Shown here piece after piece: positions 1,670 to 64,000 of a stretch of DNA of 64,000 bases. Under the pieces are notes generated by a model that saw only the letters and a program-made list of their open reading frames with translations, searched no databases and had not been told where the DNA came from. Position 1 is the first letter of the stretch. Every line of letters begins with the position of its first letter. Source of the DNA: Takakia lepidozioides (Eukaryota; Plantae; Bryophyta); NCBI GenBank assembly GCA_030704615.1, contig CM060731.1, positions 66,216,001 to 66,280,000 of the forward strand, in the 5' to 3' direction. The position numbers were made by a program, and so were the translations under genes.

Positions 1670-3978
1670 CTAAAAGTCCATGCAAGCCGCATTTGTGTCC
1701 TTCAATAGCACAACACAATCGTCTACAGAATCAAGATGGTACAAAACTGGGATGAGGGCGACACAGCCAAAAAGCACTGGGATGGGACCAAACACCCAAA
1801 GAAGCAATGGGCAAGCCATATAGAAACCCCGTGTACCCATAGTAAAGAAATTGCACCCTGCGGCCAGGACGTTGGCGACAGAGTCAGGTGTATTTCCGGC
1901 AGGGACGTTGATGAGAAAACAGACATCATTTATGTGATGCACCGATTGCATATAGCACAAGAAAGAGAACATAAAAAAGGATAGTAGTGACATGTACTTC
2001 ACGGACTCCATCGAGTTCATGTACCGATTTGTCCAGTAGCTCTCAGAGCGAGTCATGAAGACTGCCACCATGGAGACCAGCAGGATGGCTGTGGTGGCCA
2101 TCAGTGTGCACCCCATTATAGTGTTGCGCAGCGTCTGCACTGCCAATAGATTGTTCTTCTCATTATCCTGCAACATATTTTCCACCCACTGCAACATTAG
2201 TCTTCCTGCTGGGTGCAGACCCACCCCCACACACACACACACACAAAAAAACACACGTTGTATGAGTGTGTTTGGCAGTGTGAGAGAGTACATGACTTTA
2301 GTCCTGGCTGTTAAAATGTTCTCCCAAAGCCTCTTACCAGAGTCTCAATGACTATCTGAAAATCCTTAGTCCCAGGATTGTGTAATGGCCATGCTATGAG
2401 GCTTCTGAGCTTTCTTCTACCTACTACTTGCAGACTTGGGCCTATGGTAAAAAGTAGGAAATATGAGTATCTGTTCTCTCTATCCCACCCACACTGTGCA
2501 GTCTCCCTGGGGCCCTTCAGGCTTCCTATGTAGGTACAAGGAGAGAACTTTATTACATCCCTCTGAGGACCCAAGGGACAGAGAGCAGTAGGGATCAGCT
2601 CGGAAAGAACCTTGAAGTATTACAGAACTACTGTGGAAACAAAGAATCATTCAAACTTTACATGAAGGAAAGTAATCACATTGTTTCTTCGACATCTGGA
2701 GCAGCAACTCTTCTACATGGGCTCAATCTTGAGCTACCTTAAGGCATGCTCCAATGATGGGACTTTGGTAAATTAAATCCTACTTGAAAACCAGCTTAAG
2801 GAGGGCCAACCAACAGCAAGACTGCCACAGACTACCCCAAGCTGTCCCCATCTCCATTGGGAAGCTTTTTTGAAACAGCTCCTTGCCACAAGCATTTGAA
2901 GTCACATGTAAATTAACACCAAACTCATGACATATCTACACAGAAAATGTATCTGGTTAATTTGTTACCAATGCCACCACCCATTGAGTGGTGGGACATT
3001 CACTGTGTTCCTGTCCTTAGGACACAATATGCCCTAGCTAATAGTGATTCACAAAGGGGCCTAATCACGGCGATTGTGAACAAAGTAGTTGTATGTAAGG
3101 TCTATAGTTGCATTGATGGACTGTACTGTTACAGACCTGATTTTTCCAGATAATGTCAAAACGGCGTATTGTTGGTCCCATCGAATTTATACATGTCTAT
3201 AAATAGAAGAGTGGGCTATGGCCTGCTACAGCTCTCTTTGTCATAGCTTCTGCAAGTCTCACCAAAAGACATTGTAGGCACAATGGCACTCTTGCTGGAT
3301 TGTCAGGAGACGCCCAACCCCTCCCTGTAACTGCTTCCATCGATACAGCCACTGACTGTCTTCTCTTCAGGCAATTATAGGTTAAGTTATCAGACTATAT
3401 AAGTCGAGTCATTGACATTTCTTTGAGTGGAGAAGGGATCACAGGGGATCCGAGCGATAGGCAAAATCCTGGGCTTTGCATGTACCTAATACCACAAGAC
3501 GATTATACCACATCTCGTGTATATTTCGGGTGGGTACTACCAGACAAGCAACACTTTCATGAAAATGCCACCCAATTATGCAACCTTCTTGTTTATGCTA
3601 GTTCACTGGTGGTTAAAAATGTGGTGCAACCTTCCTGGCTGAAAGCAATGGTTCGACAATTCCTTAGACCGTCGTGTACGCCAAGACAGTTCCCTTATAA
3701 TCAACATCCAGAGAGAAAAAAGAAGACAAACCTTCTATGCGTTCCGAAGGGGGCGAGAGAGAGACAGACAGGAAGGGAGAAGAGAATGGAGAAACCCAGC
3801 GAATTCGCACCTTCATTATTTTGCGGACCCATTCTCTTCTGTCACGGTGGCTGAGGCCCACCACAGTCTGCAAAGGGTAGCGTATGATGCGGTAGTAGAA
3901 ATAGGCGTGGTAGGCCAGCAGCGAGGCCATGCCCAGCGGTACCAGGATGTAGTCCAGGTACTGTGCCCTCCATGCCAT
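1670..3978 (-). CDS. DUF599-family membrane protein, 2 exons (3978-3811, 2167-1670), ~221 aa
   Basis: Exon 1 MAWRAQYLDYILVPLG...WVRKIMK ends at AAG|GTGCGA (3810). The acceptor TTGCAG|GAT (2167) continues in phase 0 into DNEKNNLLAVQTLRNTIMG...GTRGFYMACPLLLWVFGP, which are DUF599-type motifs. Confidence 0.9.
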
Positions 3979-5789: not shown

Positions 5790-6433
5790 TATAACGTCCC
5801 TGTGAGATTGAACCTGCGACAGGCTTGGCAGGATGTTGAACGGTTCAGCAATCATCGACGGCTGTCTGGGGGAGGTGATGGGGATGTCACGTGGAACAGC
5901 AGGTGGTGGCAAGCTCCCGTTGATCAAGACCAAAAGCTACATATGAATATGGTAGATAAGTGTACAGGGAGGAGATTAGGGATTCTCTCCTTCTGGTTTT
6001 TTTCCTAGATAAGAGAACTCGGAGATGTTGGCTGTACAGAGTGTGGCAGACAGGACGGTCATGGTGAACAGTGACTACGAGTAGGGAAGAGAGATGATAC
6101 AGAAGCTGATGCATGGTGTGGCGGTTGGGAGGACTGGGTGTGTCCCAGTACCATGTGCAATTCTAGGATTGGGTGATAGTTCCAGTTGAGTCAGGAATCA
6201 TTGGGACTTGAAGGATCTGTACATAAAGTAATTGTTGGTGTTTGGCCATGTTGGAATAAGAGCCAGTGGCACAGAGTGATGACTGCAGTGGCCTAGGATG
6301 TGTGATCTCGCCTAATTGCCAAGGACTTAGTTTAGATTCAAGTCTGGTCATGATGGAACCATTGGCAGGGGAGTGAGATCTGAAGTTTCAGTCGACGAGA
6401 CAGGGAGGAGAATTAGACAAGAGGAATGTAAGA
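5790..6433 (+). repeat. 5' LTR (644 bp)
   Basis: Direct repeat of 10665-11324. Starts TATAAC, ends GTAAGA, followed by TCT and the PBS. Confidence 0.93.
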
Positions 6434-6492: not shown

Positions 6493-9400
6493 TTGGAAGC
6501 TCGTTGCTTCAGTGGAATTCAATCTCTAAGAGGTAGGTGTAGCACATCTCCAGAGTTGATGGAAGGAGAGACAAGCCATACACAAGCTGCAGTTGAGAAA
6601 ACACAAGAAATTGTTGTGCCAGAAGAACTTACCACTATAAAAGCTGGAGATCTAGCTCAGGTCATTCGTGAGGCAGTAGCTAGTGGAGTGAAAGAGGGCA
6701 TAGTTGCTATTGGCAGGAGACCTACAACAAATCAAACTCCACCGGCGGTGCCACCCGACCAGCAAGTGGTAGACCAACCAGTAAGTGCTCCCCATAATGA
6801 TTTGCATGCAAGAACTAGGACAAAAAGAAAAGAGGCTAGAGGTGGTTCTGCCTCTGGTGCATCCTCACAGGATAGCCGCTCCATGATGGCAAGGGATTCT
6901 AAGAGAAGAACGGTTGACAAGGAAACTAGGAAGATGACGCATCTTCCTGAATTCCATGGTCGCCCAAATGTGCCTTGCACTGAGGTGTTGTCTTTTCTGG
7001 AGACTCTGGAAGAGTTCTTCAGTGAGGACTATACAGATGCAGATAAGATCCGAACCAAACGTCTATCAGAGAAGGAACAAGAAGAACACCGACGGTTGGG
7101 TCAGTGTTTCATCTGTCATGAAAAAGGCCATCGGGCGTTTGAATATTTCAAACGCGTACAACGTGCAGCTGCAGCTGTGATTGTGCAAGAGGTTGAGGAT
7201 AAGATGGATGTGGATGCACCTGGGACGAGCAAAGGTAAACAGCTGAGGATCTCAACGGCTGTGATGGGTGAGGAGATAGACTATAATTCCACAGTCATAC
7301 GATTGAATGGTCAGGTGGGAAGAGAGACCACGACTGTTTTGATTGACCCAGGAAGCAGCCATAACTTTTTGTCTCAAAATTTTGCAAACAAGTGCAAGCT
7401 GCAGTTAATGGAGGTTGGCGCCAGCACCATTCTGTTGCCTAATGAAGATACAGGATCTAGCAACAGTAGGAGCTTGGATGTCCCTGTCACAATGCAGGGG
7501 ATCACCACTGTGGCGGATTTTGAGGTCTGGGATGGTGCGAGGTACGACGTCATCTTGGGGATGCAGTGGCTGGCATCTGTGGACGCTCAAGTGGCATGTC
7601 GAGATTGCTCAGTGGAGGGGGTGTTGCCTGGCGGTAAGCGATTCAAGCTTACAGGTATAAGAGCCATACCCAATGTTCCCTTGTTGTCAGCCCTTCAAAT
7701 GAAGCGATGCATACGGAAGACAGCCGATCAGCTGTTCTTCGTAAGCATTCATGAAAATGATAACGAAGACATTGAAGTGGAGTTGAACAATCTCAACAGA
7801 GCAGATAAGGTCTTGTCTGAATTTTCAGATGTGTTTCCCAGTGATCTGCCTGGACTACCTCTTGAATCATGATCATGCCATTGAGTTCATGATCAGTGAT
7901 CATGCCATTGAGTTGGTTCCTGAAGTAGTTCATGTCTCTAGGATTCCTTATAGGCATTCTTTGGTGGAGAATGAAGAATTGGAGAGACAGCTGGCTGATT
8001 TGCTAGAGAAAGGTTATATTAAGCCTAGCAAGTCTCCCTGGGGAGCACCAGTGTTGTTCAAGAAAAAGAAAGACGGGACTTTAAGGTTGTGTGCGGACTA
8101 CAGATGGCTGAATAAGCTAACTGTAAAGAACAAGTTTCCACTTCCTAGGATAGATGACTTATTTGATTACTTGCATGGTGCGCAAGTATTTTCAAAGATA
8201 GACCTACGAAGTGGATACCATCAGATCCGTGTCAAAGACTCGGACACGTTTACGACGGCCTTCAGAACTAGATTTGGCCACTATGATTATACACTGATGT
8301 CTTTTGGACTCACAAATGCACCAGCCACTTTCATGTGCTTAATGAATACCTTATTTAGAAAGTATCTGGGGAAATTTGTGTTACTCTTCATGGATGACAT
8401 TTTAATCTATTCAAAATCTGAAGGAGAACACGTGGAACACTTGAAAAGTGTTCTAGAGATCTTAAGAGAAAATAAACTCTATGCTAAGAAGAGCAAGTGT
8501 GAGTTTTTGGTTTCCCAAATGGAATACTTGGGTCACATAGTGTCAAAGAATGACATCTTAGTTGATCCCAAGAAGGTAAAGACAGTGGCAGAATGGCCAA
8601 TCCCAAAAGATAGAACTGATGTGAGAGCATTCTTAGGACTTGCAAGCTTTTATAGAAGATTTATAAAGGCATTCTCCAAGATTGCAGCCCCTCTCACTAG
8701 CTTGTTGAAAGGCTTAGGAGCGATTACCTGGACCGAGGATTGTAATGAAAGCTTTGAAAAGCTTAAACATATGTTGACACATGCTCATGTCTTGAAGTTA
8801 ATGAATTACAAGACAGGTGGTCTAGTACTTTGCACAGATGCGAGTGACCTGGCCATAGGAGCTGTGTTAATGCAACACGGACAGGTAATAGCTTATGAGT
8901 CTAGAAAACTAAGCCCAGCAGAGCTGAACTACCCAGTGCATGAAAAGGAATTGTTAGCCATCATACATGCCTTAAAGGTTTGGCGGCATTATCTGCTGGG
9001 AAGGGAATTTAAGATTGAGACAAACCATGAAATCTTGAAGTATCTGGCCACACAACCCAACCTCAGTCGCAGACAATGTCGTTGGGTAGAATTCCTCCAG
9101 CAGTTCTTTTTTGAATTACATTATGTAAAGGGGAAAGAGAACGTGGTGGCAGATGCGTTGTCCAAAAGAAGGTGGACAACAGCTATTTCAATGATAAGAA
9201 ACATTGTGATAGACGAGGTAAGAGGTCACTATGCTAGAGATGCATATTTTAGTGGCCCTTTTGAAAGCATGTCTCGTGGGGTTAAGACTCCCGAGGAAAT
9301 TGGCAAGTATCTTGCTTATCTGTTGAAGGATGGATTGTTGTACTACAATGGGCGTCTATGCATCCCTCTGGTTGCAGACTTTAGACTAAAGATCATGTAC

Positions 9401-10652
9401 GACTGTCATAACATACCCATGGCAGGCCATCCTGGCTTTCAGAAAACATATCTCGCAGTCAGGAAACAATTTTTCTGGCCTGGATGAAGAAGAACATACG
9501 AGATAGGTGTTACCCTTGTCAGGTAACCAAGACAGAACAGATCAAGACTCCTGGACTTTTGCAACCTCTGAATGTGCCTAGGGCAAAGTGGGAATCTATA
9601 AGTATGGATTTCATTGTCTCTGCCTAAGACAAGAAATGGACATGATGCCATCTTTGTGGTGGTTGATCGCTTGTCAAAGCAGGCGCATTTCATACCCACA
9701 AAGATGAGTGCAACTGCTATAGACACAGCTAATCTCTTTGTAAAAGAGATATACAGACTGTATGGATTGCCAAGAGAAATTGTGTCTGACAGGGATTCGA
9801 AGTTTACAAGTGGATTTTGGACTGCTTTGTGCAAAGCTTTGAATACCAGATTGTGTTTTAGCAGTGCTTACCATCCAGAATCTGATGCTCAAACAGAAAG
9901 GACAAATAGAACCTTAGAAGACATGCTCCGAATGTATGTGGGGCAAAGGAAAAGCTCTTGGGAGCAATATTTTCATTTGTGTGAGTTTGCCTATAATAAG
10001 AACATGCATACAGCTATTGGGGTAAGCCCATTCGAAGCTGTCTATGGGCAAGATTGCTTGACACCAACATCTTGGCATGTTTCAAATACTAAGGTCGAAA
10101 GTGTCAATCAGATCATAGCAAGGATGCAGCAAGAAATGGACTTAATGAAGGATAGCATGAGGAGAGCTCAGGAAAGGGCAAAGGCCTATGCTGATCAGAA
10201 AAGATCTTTTAGGGAATTTGAGATCGGAGATCAAGTATTTTTGAAAGTGATCCCTAAGAAGAGCCAGTTGAGCCTAGGAATGCTACAAGCTTTCCCCGAG
10301 GTACTGTGGATCTTTCAAGATTATCAAGAAAATTGGCAAGGTAGCCTACCAGCTGGAACTGCCTGTTAGGTGGAAGATACATGACGTATTTCATGTGAGC
10401 CTCCTTAGGAAATATGTTTCGGATCCCAACCATGTTCTCCCAGAATTGCCAAAGGTCAAAACTGAAGGAGAAGTTGTGGTAGAACCAGAAGAGATTCTTA
10501 AGATAGAGGTGAAAACCTTGAGATCTCGTTCTTGGAACGAATTCTTGATCAAGTGGAAGAATTACCCTGTAGAAGAATCTACATGGGAGAGAGAAGATGA
10601 TCTTCGTAAGAACTTTCCCCAATTCAGTATTGAGGACAATACTCCCTTATAG
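6493..10652 (+). pseudogene. Gag-Pol polyprotein (disrupted): shortened gag with Zn knuckle, aspartic protease, RT, RNase H, integrase, chromodomain
   Basis: CFICHEKGHRAFEY knuckle (last C>Y); LIDPGSSHNF protease; [11 protein letters not shown]; TDASD/ELLAI RNase H; GHPG, VDRLSK, SDRDSKF, ERTNR integrase; EFLIKWKNYPVEESTWE chromodomain. Breaks at ~7870 (short duplication of GATCATGCCATTGAGTT), ~9487, ~9614 and ~10290. Confidence 0.93.
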
Positions 10653-48083: not shown

Positions 48084-51000
48084 ATGGGAGGCCCTGTGGT
48101 GAGCGTTTACCAGGCCACTATCGGCATTGAAATTGGTTTTTCGTTCGGTATTGCTCATCTGATCACTCTAGCGCTCGTTGCGATGGTGACGATTACAATG
48201 GCAACATGGACCGTGCTATTATGGTGGAGGCAACGCGGTGTGGGACCAAGGATCTGGCCACTGTTAGGCGCATCTCTGGAGCAGTTCTCCAATTTTCCGA
48301 TGATGCACGACTGGCTGCTGGCTTACTTTGAGCATACCAAAACCTTTCAAGTGCCCATGCCGACTTGCACCTACACCTACACTGTCGACCCTGCAAATGT
48401 GGAATACATTCTCAAGACCAACTTCTCTAATTATCCTAAGGTATAACCTATATTCCAGCGAAGTGATAAAGTTTTGGCACTGACTCCAACAGATTCATCG
48501 TATGTACACGAAGACACCATATAAGTAGATTATAGAACTTTTACTATACGCGCTCATAGGATGAGCTTCGTGGGTCTTCAAATGAACAACAGCCTGCAGA
48601 TCCCGACGTATGAAATCTTCTCCGGATGAACCACAAGGAAATCCTTGGAACTTTAGTTTGAGACTGCGTGATGCTGTATGAACTAGTTTTGGAGGGAGAT
48701 TTTGACCTGTAATATACCGATGCAGTAGCTTCTGCATGGAAATTTGAAATTATCTGTTTTATAACCGACGCAGGGTGAGGCATTCCATAGCAACATGGAG
48801 GTACTTCTGGGCGACGGGATCTTCAACACTGATGGGGAGGCATGGAAGTGGCAGCGCAAGACAGCTAGCCACGAATTCAACAGAAAGACCTTGAGCGACT
48901 TCAGTGCAGTCGTTTTCCGTGACTATGCGCTCACACTGGCATACATTCTGCACCAAAATGGGCTTGTCCTTAATCAGGCCGTTGACATGCAGGTATGTCT
49001 TCGGGAAGGGTCTACCCCCGTATCTCATGAAGATCTTGAGCTCGCATGCATGATTGGAATTTCACAGGTAGTCTACCCTGAGACTATCGGGTAGACTCGG
49101 GTAGTCTATCGGAATCTAACTAAACCCCAGGGGATTGAAGGTTTCGACTTGTTGAAGTTCTATTTGGAAAACATTTGTTTGCTGCTGAAGATTGTCATCT
49201 GTCGAAAAAGTGCAACTAGTCAAAGATTCAAGCAACTGATGCGGTCACGACTGAGAGTATCCATGTTGGGAGGGACATAGTTCTGATCATACCGTGATGT
49301 GCAGGATTTGTTCATGAGGATGACGCTGGATTCAATCTGTAAAGTAGGATTCGGGGTTGAGCTTCACTCGTTGACTCCGTCATTACCCGACAACCCGTTT
49401 GCCAGAGCGTTCGATGCAGCCAACGAGGGGGTGACACTTCGCTTCATCGACCCACTCTGGCGCCTCAAGCGCCTGCTCTATTTTCCCTCTGAGGCCCGAC
49501 TGGCCAAAAGTGTGAAGGTGGTGGATGACTTCACCTACGGTGTCATCCGCTCTCGCCGGTCAGAGCTTCAACGCTGTGCATGTTCTAAAGGTGCTACTTC
49601 CAGTGTAAGCACTTGGTACCAATTCCTGACCTGCGCGTTGTTGATCTTCTGGTAACCAACGGATTCTAATTCAGAATGCCAACTGCAAGCAGCTCAGTAT
49701 TTCAGTTCGAAATTGTCATCCCGTTGATGCCCCACGTACAGTTCTTAAATATATTCCTGATCGCAAATTCCCTATCAAGATTAATGGCCTTGAAAATGGT
49801 ACGTCGCCACGTTCTGATGATCATCGGGTTTTCTGATCGTCTGGTTTTGCAGAGTTCGAGGGCTGATCTACTGTCCCGCTTCGTATCGCTAAGCAATAAC
49901 GATGACAAGCGTTCGTTTTCTGACAAGACGTTGCGGGACATGGTGCTCAACTTTGTAATAGCAGGGCGTGACACTACGGCTGCCACTCTGTCCTGGTTTG
50001 TTTACATGCTCTGCCTTCACCCTGAAGTGGGCGACACCATTTATGCCGAACTCTGTCAGCTTGAGAGTCCGGCAAAGCCCCCGGAGAGAGGCTGTAATGC
50101 ATTCGTAAACCAACCAAAGGGCGGATTGTGTGAGCAGATGAAATTCTTTGCAGAGTATTTGACATATGAAGCGGTTTCAAAGCTTCCCTACTTGACTGCT
50201 GCCATCACTGAAACCATTCGCTTATATCCTGCAGTGCCACAGGTACAACGTTTACATGTACTGGTTGCCCGGAGTTCTTAATTCTCTTTTCGATTGTTTA
50301 ATCTCGGAGCCTGCAGCTGCTTGGCATCTATAGGGTTACACTAGACAATTGATGCGTGATAAACTAAGTTGATGCTTTTTGTAACCACACAATCACATAT
50401 ATCTGATCAATATGTATAACTACGTTCATGGCGCCAGGACCCGAAGGGTATATTGGCAGATGATGTGCTGCCGGATGGCACCAAAGTGAAGAAGGGAAGC
50501 ATGGTCACATACGTACCCTACTCCATGGGCCGCATGCAGTGGCTGTGGGGCTCTGATGCCCGTGAGTTTCGACCTGAGCGCTGGCTCAACCTCGATGGTT
50601 CCTTCCGCAAGGAATCCGACTTCAAGTTCACTGCATTCCAGGTACTGGTCTTTGCCGCTTTGACACACAATCTTGCTGCAACTATTGTCAATGCGCACAA
50701 GCACGACCTCGGACATAATATAACATGAATATGAACTCATGAATCTGTGCTACTTAATGACAAACGTTGTGGATGCCAGGAACCTGCCCAATACTAACGT
50801 CCACTGGCAATCCCAAGTGTCACCAACCCGTGTTATATACCAGCTCTAGACCTCTCTTTGGACTCACTGACTTACCACAACGATCCGAACGGGTGTTGGC
50901 TTGGGCAGGCAGGACACCGGGTGTGTTTGGGAAAGGATTCAGCCTTCCTTCAGATGCGCATCACAGCGGCTCTACTGTGTCGCTTCTTCCGCTTCCAACT

Positions 51001-51094: not shown

Positions 51095-52367
51095 GCTAGA
51101 TCAGATTTCTCTGGAGCGACGCACACCGGGACCGTACCAGGCTCTGTAATTCTAGATCAATTCATTTTCCAGATGTCTGATATTATGGAAGAACCCGTGC
51201 ACTGGAGGTATTGAGATTGGAAGATATTGCGCGAGTTCTGAGGCATGTGCCTTGTGGGCGTGAGAGGATAGAAAGATGACAAGCTTTCAAGTGTGAAGGA
51301 GAGCTCCCCTCATAAAAGGAGCTCCCAGGTTCTGAAAACTGTTACCTAGAGATATACGCACCGATCTAGAGAGACTGGAAGAAACATTTGAGATATTATC
51401 TACTTTAATGGGGCTCTGCTGTAAATATGGGGTCACCTTTGCAGGCCCTTGAATTCAAACTTCAGAGCAGATTGTTGTTCTGAAGAGTCGAATTTCCGCA
51501 GAATTTAATTGTTAACCAGTTAGAACTTGATCTAGTGGGTTTTGATGTTACGTCACAGTTCGAAGCTTCCACAATCCGATTCATAGATTTCAAGATTGTG
51601 CGTGCAAAGGTTGAGAGTAGAGAAGGTAAACCCCACTGAGTACATTGAACACTCTTGACCAACAAGATGGAGTTTGATTCTTTTGGAATCCAGTTCTTGA
51701 TGGGTAACTTGCAGACGAAATATTTGGGTTTCGATCTGTTGCATACTTCAGTATTACAGGTTGAAGTTTTCTTTAATGAAATCTTCACAGTAGAGAACTT
51801 AGCAAACAGCCCCGGACAGAACAGAATAATCCGGGCCAGCTGCTACACCTTGCATTCCACTATTTGGGCATGCTTCTTGCTTACATGCCATGGCTTTGTA
51901 TCAGAACCCAAAGAGAAAACATGATGTCCTTGTTACTGAAACTAAGAGAATCTACATTCTTGTAGTCTGACAGAGTACAAATGACAGTACTTACAAATAA
52001 AGCAGAAGATCTTATTCAGTCCATTTTGTTTCCATTGTAGTCTCCTTATAGGAAATAATGTGAGAAGTAGGAGTATATATACATGTTCAAAGGAATTGTC
52101 TATTATATACCCTATACCCTAAACCCTACAGGACATGTGGGTGAAACGACTAGGATCCGGATCTCTACACTTGTGCTTTGTCAGACGCATGCAGATTGGC
52201 GCCATTCAAGCAAATTCGTAATAACAGATCTTTGCAGGAATTCGTGAAGGGGCGTCATTCCGATCTTTCACTGCTCAAAGTCTGATCACTTTTTTCGTAA
52301 ACGAGAAATAAGCGGTGAGATTCCATCGGTGCCCTCCAGTACGTAGACAAGAATCGGCGTAGCCGAC

Positions 52368-52481
52368 TACGTAACTATGGAATGGGCTGGCAGATGACAT
52401 TCTGCCCGGTAGGGCGAGACACTTTTCGAGGTGGGCAGCCAGCCGGGCAGAATGACATCTGCCCGCCCATTCCATTGCGTA
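52368..52481. mobile_element. ~100-bp hairpin mini-element between TACGTA (52368-73) and TGCGTA (52476-81)
   Basis: Arms ATGGAATGGGCTGGCAGATGACATTCTGCCCGG and CCGGGCAGAATGACATCTGCCCGCCCATTCCAT are near-perfect inverted repeats. Confidence 0.65.
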
Positions 52482-55400
52482 ATAGTCAGTAGGTAGTTCG
52501 ATTCTGACCGCAAACACTAGCTATTGTTTCCCACCCCCGCCATAGCTTACCAGATCACTTGAATTTCCGTATTCAGAACTCATAGATATCTGTCATTCTG
52601 AGCGCGTTGCAGTAGAAGCTTGTCAAGAGCTCTCATTTTACGTACTTGGGCATGTTTTCCTCCAGCAATGGCGTTAAGCCTAGATATACCATCATTTGCA
52701 TTAAACATTGAGAATCTTGAAGCTGAAATTTCAGTCCAATGTGACGAGGATGGCGATAACCCTGGTGCTGTAGATTTGGAGAGGTTGGCAAGAGGGTTTC
52801 GTGAAGTTGATGAACGGGAAGTAGAGATCGTTGCTCAGGGAGGCCTACGACACTCCAATGACGTTAATAAGTGGGCCCGCCGTCGTTTTGATGAGTGGAG
52901 GAGATTGAAAAATCTTCCCATTGATGTGAGCATTGAAGACCTGTATCAAACAGATCATAAGTCCCTTGTGGATATGCTAGCTGGATTCTTCAGTCAAGTC
53001 CAGAAGAATGATGGAAATCTTTATCCACCTGAGAGGTAAATGTGTACAAACCCTACACTATGCTGTATTTTCTCTATTTTGTGTGCATACTCTAAGATTG
53101 GCGTGGTAGGTGGCGCTCTTGCTTGTCTTTCTTTGTCCATTATGAATGTAATTGCCTTTGATTTCAATCTTATGATATAATTTTCTTGGTGACAGCTTGG
53201 CTGGGTTGTTTCGAGCATTTGGACGTCTAATCCGTACTCGCATTGAGGCCAATGCTGTGGAAACAGGAGAATCTATCTACCAATTCAATATTCTCAAAGA
53301 CTGTAGGTTTCAGAAAGCTAAATTAGCTTGTCAAACATCTGCAGCAGCTGGACATGGACGTAAGCGAAAGATTACAAACATCTTGACAATAGATCAACAG
53401 AGACACATCCTTCAAGAACCTTTCATGTCAAAAGATGATACGAAGGGATGTGCTATGAGAGTTGTCTTTTATTGCACCCGCAATTTTTGCATCAGAGGTG
53501 CTATGGAACTTTACAATGTGATGGACTGTGACTTCACCTTTGTGACTTCACCTTTGGAAGCGATCTTGCTGGATCTTATGTTCGTTACGATGAGCGACAG
53601 TCCAAGAATCATAAAGTCGATATAGACCATTGTCAACCTGAACGATTAAGGAGGCCAGTTCAGCTCTCCGTTCCTGACATCGTTGCAACCTTTCGGTGCT
53701 TCTACGATCATCGTCCAATCTGGGGATCCGAAGAAATAGGACCTCATCCGCTCTTTTTAAGACCACTTGATGGGAATCCTCGTGCACGCAGGTCTGAAGT
53801 GGTAAGCCTAGTTCTCTTAGTGTCTCTAAATTTCATTGTCTTAAGATGATATGTTGCGGCTAGTAGACATTCTAACTTGGAAGCTTGTTTGTTTTTGTAG
53901 TGGTACAGTAAAATGCGCGTTGGGCAACGCAACCTGTCAACATGGTTAAAAGTGATTACAGTTGATACCGAAGGTAACAGTGAAGGGCAGTTTACAAACA
54001 AAACTCCAAGGGTTTCAACAATAAGCCGCTTAAATCGAATGGGAGTTCCACCTAAGATTGGTATGAGGATAACAGGCCATCAAACTGAGGAAGGATATAT
54101 GAGATATGACGCAGATCATGAGGGTATAATGGCCCGTGCAGTTCAGAACATCATCTCTGCTATATCTGGTACAGGAGGAGACAGAAGCTGGGAGGCAGCC
54201 CTGCAGTATGAGACAGAAAGATGGGAAGGGATTCAGCGAGGAGAGTCAAACTCTAGATATGATGCTTCTCGAGGGTCTGACTTTTCTGCTAGCCCAGTTT
54301 GTAGACTTCCAAGTTCTACATGTCTATCTACTGTTGTACGTCCTACTTCTACAGGTCATTCTACACCTGCTTCCACTTCTGCTACAAGTCCGGTTGTGTT
54401 GGTACAAAAGGATTGTGGGATCAGGTGACATGTGCAACAACAAAGAACTCCATACAATTTTTCAAATCGATCGATTGCCGAATTTGAATTGGGAACCTAT
54501 AAAATCTTTCGGGTCTGGCGAATCGGTTTTTGCCGAAGTTTCTACGAGTCATGTGGTGTCTGGTGGTCATTCCGATGAACGTGACCCTAGTTCGAAGCAG
54601 TTATCACTTGTTCCAGATGCACCTGGACTCATTCAACCGCTAGGCACTCCGCAACCAATCGTTCAACATGTTGCGTGTCCAACAACACTCTTTTCAGTAC
54701 CGATGCTTCTTTGCAAGTTGGCAAACATATCCATGATGACTCGGAAGCATTCTGGGATGATCCAGCAACAGTTGCTCACTTGGACAGATGTATTGAGAGG
54801 CACAACTTGGCAACACAGGTGACAAATTTTGGTCATACTTTCAACAACCTTACCAACTGTCCAATTATTGTCGTGCCTGATCATTCAAGCGCAATGGAGG
54901 TGTTAAAGGCACTACGGAAACCTGAGTAGATCTGATCTATTTGACCCAGTTTCCTAGAAGAAGGCGAAGAAGACGACGGGCCACTGTGGCGCCTTGCAAC
55001 CTCTCGGGGATGCTCTATGCTTAAGCCAAGTTTCTGCTACCAATTGCGTATTGTTTGAGTGTTAGCAGGTCTTCAGATGGTTGTGAATCGTGCCTGCACA
55101 CAGTTAGTCTAGCTGACAACTATAGACATGATCAAGAGAGCTCGAAGTTTGTCTTGCTCAATGTTACAGATTGAGCAAATTCGAAGACAATGTATACACT
55201 CATAGTTCATCACAATAGTGATTACATTTTTTGAGCATTGCTAGAGATTATGGCAATCTCACATGTACATAAAGATAGTCGTGGCAGAGACTCGAGAAAC
55301 ACAAACTCTAAGTACCTCCATCAAAATGACAATTGAAATTGGCATCTTTATGCTTATTTCAATACGGGATCATGCAATAGCTGCAGATCGTAATAGAAAC

Positions 55401-55636
55401 CGAAAAGTCAAACTAGCACATTATGCTTTTGCATAATGTACCAGAAGCCATTGCGCAAAAGCATAATCTGCGAGCAATGTGGCTAAAGCAGGATTGATTT
55501 TCATAATGTTTCTGGAAAATGAACTGGTATGAGCTGCCCAACAAAAATCCATATATGCCCGCAAAAAATGATCACGATTCTGCCGAGTAAGAGACCTCAA
55601 AAGCGGCAGAATCGACTACCTACTGACTATTACGTA
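52476..55636 (+). mobile_element. Tyrosine-recombinase (Crypton/DUF3504-like) DNA transposon with terminal inverted repeats
   Basis: Left TIR CGTAATAGTCAGTAGGTAGTTCGATTCTGACCGC (52478-52511) versus reverse complement of right TIR CGTAATAGTCAGTAGGTAGTCGATTCTGCCGC (55603-55634). The TIRs enclose a YR gene. Confidence 0.82.
52668..54929 (+). pseudogene. Crypton/DUF3504-type tyrosine recombinase; introns 53036-53195 and 53802-53900; frameshifted by a 14-bp duplication at 53527-53554
   Basis: Spliced reading: WARRRFDEW...FFSQVQKNDGNLYPPE|SL...FCIRG..EL...ERQSKN...LFLRP...|WYSKMRVGQRNL...FTNKTPRVSTISRL...GMRITGHQTEEGYMRYD. C-terminal TFNNLTNCPI-type tail. The 3' splicing or frameshift after 54428 is unresolved. 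Confidence 0.82.
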
Positions 55637-56228
55637 CGTTGACTTCCACGCAGATTAGAGGTAGCCGGTGGGGCCAACTTGATATATAGTGGGTGCTGTT
55701 GCATAATTCGGGTGTTGGACCAGATTTTGACGAATTGCAGTTTGTTAAATGGTTTCTTGCTGTGGGGGAGACCATATCTTATCAGTTTTCAAACAAGTCG
55801 GCTGGAACACGCTTCCGGATCAATATGTTTCCAAGCAGCTTTTGGATGACAGTAGTTGAGCTTGCTGCTGAGAGGTGGGTCTTTCCTCCTGTGGCGTTCA
55901 GAATGGTAGATGTTTTGAGTAAGAACAGTTGTCCGGACGAATCCCTCACAGTGTGACATAAAGTTGTCGCACAACTGATTGTGGGGCCGGCTATGGCGTG
56001 ATCAGTAGCTGCAATCCAGCCGCCCACTGACCAAGCTTGACATGCTAATTAACTGATCAGTGATCATTCGCTTTAATGAGCCGTCACTCAGGCTAGGCGA
56101 ACATGGCGGTATTTAAGCGGCAATATTGTGAGCGTCAACATATTTCCAACCACAACCGACCCCCTGTGGATGTAGACGCTCAGTACCAGGCCGTTGGAAA
56201 AGATAAAGCCCCCAGGAGGAGATCACCT

Positions 56229-61604: not shown

Positions 61605-64000
61605 TCATCTCTGCAGCAATGCAAGTAGATGCAAGAGTTCTTCATCAGTGGCACCCTGATTACTATCAGACGATTGACATAATGAGGATGCTGGATTCCT
61701 CAAGAGAGACTGAGATTCGTGGTTGGGGTCTAGACTTGAAGGGCGGAGACCAATGTTGTCAAAAGAACTGCCATTAGAAGAAAAGGAAGAATTGGAATTG
61801 AATGTAAGGGGAAAGGGACCTGCAGAAGATATGGATGCAGCAAGAGAAGGAGAAGCATAGGCATGCACAGAGGAGGAACCAATGACAGGTTCTGAAAAAG
61901 AAACAGGGTTGGCATGTGATGGAAGACCAAGATTGAGAGGGCGAGCACTCTGAGGTAACATCTGTTGAAAATTTGGAAAAACAATGCCACCATTTTGAGC
62001 AGAGTAATTCCCAGTCTCATTCTCTGGATAGACAGGCAATGCACTAGTTGGAGAGATAAGGTGGTTACTGGGCTCAGAAAGATGCTGGCCCCTGCTAAGA
62101 GAATTGAATTGCCAGGCAGCGGTTTGTTCATACTGCATCCCATTGGCAGACAGGTAGAGACTATGCTGACCTGGGTGGCCAGGGGAATTGACTGCCAATG
62201 GAGGCAGTGACCAGGCCTGCTGTGGCACTTCCACTGACATGGAGGCTGGCATTTGCACTTGCTCCTTGGGCAAGCCTACAACTCTATGTGCAGGCGCTGA
62301 AGACGGAGGGCAAGAGACTGAAGAAGAGGGTAGAGACAAAGTCAGCTTGCTAGGTTCAAGACTATAGTCAGGACGTGCTATGGCTCGCTTTACTTCCACT
62401 TTCTTTCCTCGGAATGGTAGATAATGCCGCCGCACAGCAATATCAGCATGTTTGGGATCCTCAAACACCACATATCCAAAACCTCTGGACCGCATGGTCC
62501 CATCATCATCAGTGCCACAGATAACCACAGCATCCACAACTTTGCCAAACTCTTGGTCAAAAAACTCCCACAGCTCCTCATACTGAATGAAGTGTGGCAG
62601 ACCACCCACAAAAACCTTTCTGGCACCCATATTATCATCCCTCTTGTTGCTGCCCCTGGTTGAGACAAGAGTTTGGGACATGGGAGAACACACTGCAGTT
62701 TTTACTACTGGCCGGATGCTTGAACATGCTGAAAATGAACCCTGCAGCTCTCCTGATCCATGCGCAAATGTACACTTGAGGCCATTTGGGCATTTTCCTG
62801 TCTTTTCATGGTATGTACATAGCTTGGTCTTAAGGTTTCTCATGGCTTGATCACCTCCCTCTCCATTCCCTTTACCTGCTCCACAACTCATTTCTGAACT
62901 ATCAATCCTATCGGCATTGACAAGAGTCATCCACTGAATGAGTGAAATGATATTTGCTTCCCCAAGAACAACCCTCATCAGATGCAAGAAACCAGCATAT
63001 GAGTCTTACATCTGAGGCAAATTCACTGTTCCTTTCCTTCGCCAACTTGCATTAAGGAACTCACCCTGTGCACACTCAAAAGATTTTTCATCTTGTGAAG
63101 AAGATAACAAAGGGGGGACAGACTGTAAAAATGGAGGAGACTGAAGCTGGTGTGAGAAACATACAGGTCCCAGTTGAGAAGTTATGGAGGTGCTCAAGGT
63201 AAACCAACCCTGACAATAACGACAGGGTTGTAAGTGTTCCTCTTCTTCATTTCTGAGATGACATACTTTGGTTGCACTGGCACTGGCTGCAAAAGACATT
63301 AGAAGTGAAAGGACGAATGCAAGAAACCTGGGGATGAAGCCTCAAAGATGGCAGAAAATTGGGAATCCACTCGAGGTTGAACAGGGGCAAGAGTAAGGGT
63401 TGCCAAAAGACTCTCCCAAGATTGCTCGGTAAAAGTTTTCTCCTCCTGCAACAATGCCCGCATCTCCAGTGAAGGAGCCAACTGCAAGGGTTTCTCGTTG
63501 CGGACACTAGCCACATTTCGATTTGCACCATGCTTCAGAAGCAACGCAGTGCAGAGCAAATGATTGTTCTTGACAGCGTAATGCAGGGGTGTCTCTTTTG
63601 TGGCTGCCATTACATTCACACACCCAGCATCCTTCTCCAAAATAAGTGAAAGAGCATCAAAATATCCATGCCCAGCTGCAGTGTGAACAGGAGTGGCTCC
63701 AAGCTTGTTCCCGGTCAACACATTAGCGCCTGCGTCCAGAAGGCTGGCAACAACACGCACATTGACATCCGATCTATTCGAAAGAGTGGCTTGCCGCAGA
63801 GCCCAATGCAGGGCAGTATTACCATCTCCATCACGCTCATTGACAGGGGCACCAGCATCAAGTAAAAGGCACACAAGGGTTTCATCATTGCCCTGAACAG
63901 CCTTTAGTAGAGGTGGCAGAAAGGGACTCTGAGAGTGTGCTGACAATCTTGGCCGAAATAAGAGCAAACATTCTAGAAGCTTTCTTGCAATCTCGCAGTT
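61605..64000 (-). pseudogene. Ankyrin-repeat + CCCH zinc finger(s) + RRM protein; 5' end outside the window; reading frame broken at ~63300, ~63050 and ~62930
   Basis: ANK motifs (GNTALHWA, GATPVHTAA, ETPLHYAV); CCCH KTKLCTYHEKTGKCPNGLKCTFAHG; RRM KVFVGGL...RSRGFGYVVF; a degenerate CCCH (ICWFLASDEGCSWGSKYHFTH) in a third frame. Confidence 0.75.

Follow-up and report, generated by a model that had tools for sequence, protein, structure and literature searches.

The 64,000-nucleotide stretch of the Takakia lepidozioides genome analysed here (GenBank assembly GCA_030704615.1, contig CM060731.1, positions 66,216,001 to 66,280,000 of the forward strand; hereafter the window, with positions counted from its first letter) probably contains a dead member of a land-plant family of Crypton-like DNA transposons. 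This element has a single gene, whose product is predicted, from the structural model of a relative, to be a Cre-type tyrosine recombinase with two domains and of the DUF3504 kind. An initial annotation, made from the letters alone, had proposed a plant Crypton-like element with defined ends. We found that its tyrosine recombinase as only enzyme, its introns, its multiple copies, its right end and its terminal inverted repeats (TIRs) are real, but that its left boundary had to be moved: it was placed at 52476, whereas the repeated unit, as judged from source-organism contigs, starts at 52374.

We observed that exon 3 of the gene, searched with phmmer against 1.84 billion representatives, retrieves 50 matches, full-length proteins among them; the 171-aa open reading frame (ORF) of exon 3 was not on record in an exact database look-up, and a homologue search with exon 3 that was restricted by protein length gave no match within the limits set. 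We aligned 18 full-length relatives out of the 50 matches into a family profile and searched the four exon pieces singly against this profile and the databases. Exon 1 matched profile positions 17-100 (E 1e-25), exon 2 matched positions 103-219 before the duplication described below (E 6.6e-31) and 217-294 after it (E 6.5e-23), and exon 3 matched positions 298-411 (E 2.2e-29), so that the four pieces are collinear on the profile. Searches by tblastn with the relatives span the duplication and both introns, and the intronless relatives at loci L001, L003 and L128 read uninterrupted over both intron junctions. Because of the collinear pieces, the tblastn crossing and this read-through, the proposed reading of two GT-AG introns and a single 14-bp lesion is confirmed. 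The lesion is a perfect tandem duplication (53527-53540 / 53541-53554) in exon 2 that shifts the frame, and this copy is dead. Two contigs of the source runs carry the duplication as well, without differences, so an error in this assembly alone does not account for it. No further stop interrupts the exons among the ORFs of the window. The copies at L001, L002 and L128 are frameshifted as well. A Pfam search of every ORF of the element returned neither a reverse transcriptase (RT) nor a DDE transposase, in agreement with the initial annotation. The RNA-labelled run X6 yielded only short end-derived contigs, with no sign of a gene transcript.

Next, we considered the protein. In the alignment of the 18 relatives the family catalytic columns read R-E-K-K-R-H-Y, the H and the Y each being present in 17 of 18. 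The pieces from the window hold all seven residues in the conserved columns (FCIRG, MEL, SKN, NKTPR, TGH and MRY), and the order previously read from the sequence, with R in FCIRG, K in SKN, R in KTPR (K-x-x-R), H in TGH and Y in MRY, matches these columns. Pfam DUF3504 (PF12012) was detected in 6/18 relatives at E <= 0.01 (best 2.1e-10) and Phage_integrase in 5/18 (best E 2.5e-5); a further comparison, of relative P0007 with DUF3504, gave 24.0 bits, below the cut-off of 29.7. An AlphaFold model was made for the Calypogeia relative P0016, with a mean predicted local distance difference test score (pLDDT) of 73.6. The top 26 Foldseek matches of this model in the PDB are all tyrosine recombinases, led by Cre (E 2.9e-5) and followed by the Tn1549 integrase, XerA and XerH. 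VIA-align superposed the model on Cre with Z 16.4 over 274 residues, covering both domains, and on the DUF3504 protein QRICH1 with Z 10.9. By shape, the closest ESM Atlas cluster was the 'ZMYM2-like/QRICH1' DUF3504 cluster (template-modelling score 0.57), and the nearest by sequence features were DUF3504/Phage_integrase/QRICH1 clusters of cnidarians and molluscs (score 0.98). A sequence profile against the PDB gave only insignificant rows, with QRICH1 at E 1.1.

We then assessed copy number and mobility. Logan contigs of the source organism were placed on 51900-56100 at a likeness of at least 80 %, and 68 contigs matched at 80-100 % in one run: 29 at 99 % or above, 10 at 95-99 %, 18 at 90-95 % and 11 below 90 %. 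A contig with the unique left flank runs 30 nt (k-1) into the repeat starting at 52374 and then stops, and eight contigs have differing left flanks, every one of them ending ACGT just before 52374. The points at which the homology of other copies ends on the right are given with the right TIR in Table 1. Both ends are covered by contigs at several times the depth of the flanks. We also found short derivatives that consist of the ends only, resembling miniature inverted-repeat transposable elements (MITEs), with joints 52497>55572 (35 other letters), 52411>55555 (63 other letters) and 52406>55588. A 951-nt contig of X6, a run guessed to be RNA, joins the arm 52374-52411 through 63 other letters to 55555-55628 and then goes on into reversed hairpin-loop-like sequence.

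The 68 contigs, the differing flanks and the deletion derivatives bear out the earlier view of a mobile, multi-copy element, and multi-copy contigs with differing flanks rule out a single-copy domesticated gene. It is therefore very improbable that the locus represents a DUF3504-type host gene in decay, domesticated like ZMYM or QRICH1, that happens to lie between short inverted repeats. Such a gene would suit the presence of introns, the domesticated DUF3504 proteins among the nearest structural clusters, and the annotation of the relatives in Riccia, Calypogeia and Adiantum as ordinary hypothetical proteins. However, one genome here contains both diverged and near-identical copies with differing flanks, the deletion derivatives retain the ends only, the catalytic R, K, R, H and Y remain in place, in contrast to most domesticated DUF3504 proteins (PMC3212892), and frameshifts affect the copy in the window and those at L001, L002 and L128 alike.

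The gene lies between TIRs (52478-52511 / 55603-55634) of 34 bp that are 94 % identical with one single-base indel and include a perfect 20-nt inverted repeat (52478-52497 / 55615-55634). A 16-mer of the TIR core has only two sites in the window, both of them the TIRs. A metagenome scan with the 16-nt core gave 120 loci, and since none is related to the element, these represent chance 16-mers. The inverted repeats and their T(G/A)CGTA caps, TGCGTA on the left and TACGTA on the right, are thus real and in the places first described. Each cap 6-mer shares four bases with its TIR, though, and the outermost TIR letters are CGTA...TACG; of the 6-bp caps, then, the presence at both ends stood, while they are partly just the outermost TIR bases. 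With an additional TACGTA left of the hairpin described below, T(A/G)CGTA occurs three times, once per module junction (52368, 52476 and 55631); the frequency of TACGTA in the window is ~1 per 6 kb.

Two contigs of the ENA assembly ERZ25073694, L128 and L129, contain two copies of a 2.7-kb intronless relative (L128:891-3572 and L129:169-2866). They are 98.9 % identical over 2698 nt and share nothing beyond. The common block opens with CGTTAAAAATAC and closes with its inverted complement, and this TIR start is homologous to CGTAATAGTCAG in the window and to CGGTTAAAGCC in L002. No target duplication is present around either L128 or L129. This comparison shows, for a pair of relatives, that homology between copies stops at the TIRs in the clade of the window, as had been anticipated. 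The family is thus dispersed and multi-copy, with unrelated flanks (source contigs and L128/L129) and without target duplication (L128/L129), and the elements of the relatives, 2.7-3.3 kb in length, carry the recombinase gene alone.

DDE transposons characteristically have TIRs, subterminal boxes that are repeated, and short deletion derivatives. We therefore considered whether an element with TIRs, boxes and MITEs is moved in trans by a DDE transposase, with the recombinase as captured cargo or resolution function and TACGTA as target duplication. There is a precedent in MarCry-1_FO, which is moved by its own Mariner transposase, and classical Cryptons have no TIRs (PMC3212892). We regard this explanation as improbable: neither the element nor those of its relatives contain a DDE gene, the TIR start and the GCAGAAT boxes track the recombinase gene across relatives with a protein identity of just 40-55 %, L128 and L129 have no target duplication, and the 6-mer in the window overlaps the TIR itself.

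Directly left of the TIR we observed a 99-bp palindrome with a predicted DNA fold of -43.6 kcal/mol (z -10.3), which extends the repeat unit to its left boundary in the Takakia genome at 52374. The order hairpin, then left TIR (TIR-L), with a gap of 0-2 nt, is found in the window and at L001, L002 (hairpin 6280-6395, TIR 6398-6424 / 9178-9204) and L128 (hairpin 785-890, TIR from 891), loci whose exon 3 is 42-56 % identical to that of the window. All four hairpins start with GTACTA(A/G)AGAA, have a GGGCGAG loop in the same gene-relative orientation and contain inverted GCAGAAT boxes, and in 4/4 loci the hairpin lies 5' of the gene and at an identical TIR-L junction. Because side, junction and loop orientation are constant, the hairpin appears to have been inherited with the element rather than stacked repeatedly by chance, and these sequence comparisons indicate that 52374-52475 is a conserved left-end module of the clade and not a chance neighbour. 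L129 has no hairpin, although its element is 98.9 % identical to that of L128, so the TIR-to-TIR unit can move alone. In our reading, the hairpin is a left-end module that can be separated from the element and may give it a second, outer left end, which fits the repeat boundary at 52374.

A rather unlikely alternative is that the hairpin, as a palindromic mini-element in its own right or as a site at which elements preferentially dock, is stacked on the element and shares its core. The movement of the TIR-to-TIR unit alone in L129 would agree with this, as would a contig depth that is higher at the hairpin and the ends than in the interior and the T(A/G)CGTA on each side of the hairpin. If a palindrome were stacked independently at a symmetric core, however, its side and orientation should be random, so the constant 5' position, TIR-L junction and orientation of the asymmetric loop in all four loci that have the hairpin count against it. 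In addition, a second near-identical source contig links the hairpin, TIR-L and exon 1.

The GCAGAAT box recurs in the hairpin, the TIRs and the right subterminal region. In L002, 5/5 GCAGAATC boxes lie in the element ends, with 0.63 expected, and in the window 4/6 GGCAGAAT boxes do. The right end of L128 (3443-3533) contains a further hairpin, 88 % complementary, with two GCAGAATC boxes and two diverged inverted copies. A candidate microRNA precursor at 52375-52468 on the minus strand was rejected, as its Rfam matches were all below threshold (mir-448, 29.5 bits compared to a gathering score of 90); they probably reflect the hairpin shape only. Hairpins of the MITE type can be a source of small RNAs.

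The named relatives are all land plants and all annotated 'hypothetical'. They come from the liverworts Riccia sorocarpa, Riccia fluitans and Calypogeia fissa and the ferns Adiantum capillus-veneris and Adiantum nelumboides. In a tree of the C-terminal region the window falls in a clade (support 99/98) with P0001-P0005, from ENA and Logan assemblies, separate from the Riccia, Calypogeia and Adiantum clades. With the thresholds used, neither of the Calypogeia loci L005 and L006 showed a TIR or hairpin of this kind. L005 (Calypogeia fissa) does have an inverted repeat at 6533-6683, ~320 nt upstream of the recombinase gene, with 19-nt arms at 95 % that lie 113 nt apart; GGGCGAG occurs near it, and the left hairpin may have a distant counterpart in this repeat. 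Intron content varies among the relatives: L001, L003 and L128/L129 have none, L002 has intron 2 only, and L004, like the window, has both. Glomhoppers, which are introduced below, also comprise intron-bearing and intronless members and recall this variation.

Because the introns are retained and vary among the relatives, the sequences fit a spread as DNA and not via RNA, and a DNA mode of movement also fits the failure to find RT or DDE in the ORFs. In DIRS elements the terminal repeats are inverted, and the ends, once joined, have a complementary counterpart inside the element. We therefore asked whether the locus might be the remnant of a tyrosine-recombinase retrotransposon of the DIRS/Ngaro type that has lost its RT, with the hairpin as internal complementary region; the sequence that would arise if the right and left ends were joined is indeed the reverse complement of the hairpin arm plus TIR-L. 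Neither the element in the window nor the 2.7-3.3 kb elements of the relatives contain an RT, RNase H or methyltransferase, and RNA-mediated copying would remove introns, which here are kept and differ between relatives. These observations make a retrotransposon origin extremely improbable.

For a Crypton-like element, these data suggest the following route of movement. The GCAGAAT boxes, arranged in inverted pairs inside and outside the TIRs, are candidate recombinase-binding sites. The recombinase would synapse both ends. Strand exchange would then take place over a 6-bp core centred on ACGT and leave no target duplication. This would release a circle in which the abutting TIRs form a lox-like palindrome of 16 bp, TACGTA and 16 bp, and the circle might reinsert at genomic TACGTA-like sites. 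We infer the binding sites, the circle formation, the crossover at the core and the target choice from several features. The absence of target duplication, the flanks ending in ACGT and the three T(A/G)CGTA junctions fit a conservative recombination at a short core. Abutted TIRs would centre on AACGTT in L128/L129 and on AACGGTT in L002, which suggests that the ACGT centre is the conserved feature. Goodwin et al. reportedly proposed such a circle and core model for Cryptons.

Several observations weigh against a Crypton-like element that works in this manner. Among the joints listed for the source contigs there is no empty site, circle junction or new insertion, and none of the genomic copies examined (window, L001, L002 and L128/L129) is intact. 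The ends of L128/L129 and L002 show no short terminal direct repeat resembling TACGTA, which means that the TACGTA core may be family-specific or simply a piece of the TIR. Classical Cryptons have neither TIRs nor long direct repeats, just terminal direct repeats of 4-6 bp (PMC3212892), whereas the family of the window has 34-bp TIRs with homologues in L002 and L128/L129; absent TIRs are, however, a descriptive trait of the first Cryptons and no mechanistic requirement. For the protein, Pfam gave no match, DUF3504 included, on the five exon and ORF pieces of the window. The proposed DUF3504 assignment is thus supported by Pfam in 6/18 relatives and by the nearest fold and feature clusters, but not by Pfam on the pieces themselves. 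The modelled relative P0016 is just ~30 % identical to the protein of the window, and the exon-3 piece modelled alone (pLDDT 75.7) had no Foldseek match below E 1, with the Tn1549 integrase and Cre among the top rows. The fold check suggested earlier therefore came out in favour of a Cre-like two-domain fold for P0016 and without a significant PDB match for the exon-3 piece. Finally, at the HxxR position of the R-H-R-Y tetrad, where His would be expected, the window and 14/18 relatives have Lys, and 2/18 relatives have His. R, R and Y of the tetrad, the beta-hairpin K and the second H are kept in the window and the family. Type IB topoisomerases carry Lys at the position of the HxxR His, and by this analogy it is plausible that the Lys need not abolish catalysis and that the family enzyme would be active.

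Cryptons have been described, in the literature searched, from fungi, oomycetes, diatoms, animals and the green alga Chlamydomonas. We found no description of a Crypton or DUF3504 element in land plants in that literature, whose coverage leaves most subscription journals and Repbase Reports outside, and the earlier statement that no characterised land-plant element of this kind with mapped termini was known agrees with this. Among known groups, CryptonV is cnidarian (PMC8869645), and DUF3504-type CryptonA elements with intact catalytic residues occur in animals and, as Glomhoppers with unmappable ends, in Glomeromycota (PMC13465315). Like CryptonA and Glomhoppers, the family of the window has a tyrosine recombinase as sole enzyme, a sequence of the DUF3504/Phage_integrase type and a Cre-like fold (PMC3212892, PMC13465315), keeps R, K, R, H and Y, includes members with and without introns, and has many truncated or broken copies. 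Compared by description, it differs from them in its land-plant hosts, with liverworts and ferns as named relatives, in its ~34-bp TIRs, subterminal boxes and palindromic left module, and in the Lys in place of the HxxR His.

Within the green lineage, CryptonF-1_cRei of Chlamydomonas reinhardtii has a terminal motif that matches its target (CACCG / CAYCG) and excises cleanly without target duplication, which is the model we assumed for the ACGT-centred core; it belongs to the CryptonF group and a chlorophyte, and the available part of its description mentions no TIR or hairpin module (PMC9977147). Its activity was directly observed (PMC9977147), whereas we infer that of the Takakia family from near-identical copies. 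The two-domain fold of P0016 is shared with Cre/loxP and Xer/dif, and the predicted junction would likewise consist of inverted arms around a 6-bp core, as in lox, FRT and dif. Cre/loxP and Xer/dif, however, belong to bacteria and phages and are not transposons; in the Takakia family the arms, core and catalysis are predicted, and the candidate binding boxes, rather than adjoining the core, are ~22-25 bp away from it. The Fusarium Mariner-Crypton fusion MarCry-1_FO is likewise a recombinase carrier with TIRs, but has a Mariner DDE transposase and TA duplications (PMC3212892), whereas the window has no DDE gene and the relatives no target duplication. Overall, the family is Crypton-like by its enzyme and probable mechanism and differs in host range and end architecture.

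Table 1 Coordinates of the modules of the Takakia element in the window, with comparisons to related loci.
Feature	Position	Strand	Remarks
Outer left TACGTA	52368..52373	.	directly before the start of homology to other copies, whose left flanks end ..ACGT
Left hairpin module	52374..52475	+	arms 52377-52409 / 52443-52475; loop 52410-52442 with GGGCGAG; start GTA(A)CTATGGAA; two inverted GGCAGAAT boxes
TGCGTA	52476..52481	.	between hairpin and TIR-L; CGTA is the outermost part of the TIR
Left TIR	52478..52511	+	degenerate GCAGAAT box at inner end; homologous to CGGTTAAAG (L002) and CGTTAAAAA (L128/L129)
Exon 1	52668..53035	+	N-terminal, part of Cre-like DNA-binding domain (predicted); ends in phase 2
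Intron 1	53036..53195	+	GT..AG; absent from L001, L002, L003 and L128; present in L004
Exon 2	53196..53801	+	holds R (FCIRG) and K (SKN); frame broken by the 14-bp duplication
Intron 2	53802..53900	+	GT..AG; present in L002 and L004; absent from L001, L003 and L128
Exon 3	53901..54428	+	NKTPR, TGH and MRY; stop codon at 54426
3' region	54429..55575	+	no recognisable coding capacity; inverted repeat 55413-55474; indels and small inversions compared to other copies
Right subterminal inverted pair of GGCAGAAT boxes	55576..55613	+	analogous boxes: L002 at 9126, 9146 and 9177; L128 hairpin 3443-3533
Right TIR	55603..55634	+	homology of other copies stops at 55628, 55632 or 55637
Right TACGTA	55631..55636	.	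overlaps the final four TIR bases

The surroundings of the element include the pol region of a Ty3/gypsy-type retrotransposon at 6493-10369 (+), with protease, RT, RNase H and integrase split across three ORFs, and a region of large ORFs at 61605-63967 (-), in which ankyrin repeats precede a CCCH zinc finger and an RNA recognition motif, whose best database relatives are 48 % identical. A DUF599 ORF (1670-2293, -) and a cytochrome P450 fragment (49676-50281, +) are ordinary plant genes and, with the Ty3 retrotransposon, mark the window as plant-like.

Cryptons are rare elements with ends that are notoriously difficult to define. The clear TIRs, candidate boxes, hairpin, derivatives and near-identical copies described here make the Crypton transposition model testable with respect to the circle, the location of the core and the choice of target. 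We tentatively propose, as a possibility short of an even chance, that early-diverging land plants carry their own, still-mobile Crypton lineage, in which TIRs would form a lox-like site on the circle, the recombinase would bind GCAGAAT, a palindrome would serve as outer end, and stackable modules and MITEs would arise. If true, a tyrosine-recombinase class would be added to the repertoire of plant DNA transposons, and many liverwort and fern 'hypothetical proteins' of this kind would be explained as transposon genes. The family would then be the first tyrosine-recombinase DNA transposon of embryophytes with mapped ends, and a natural site-specific recombination system of plants.

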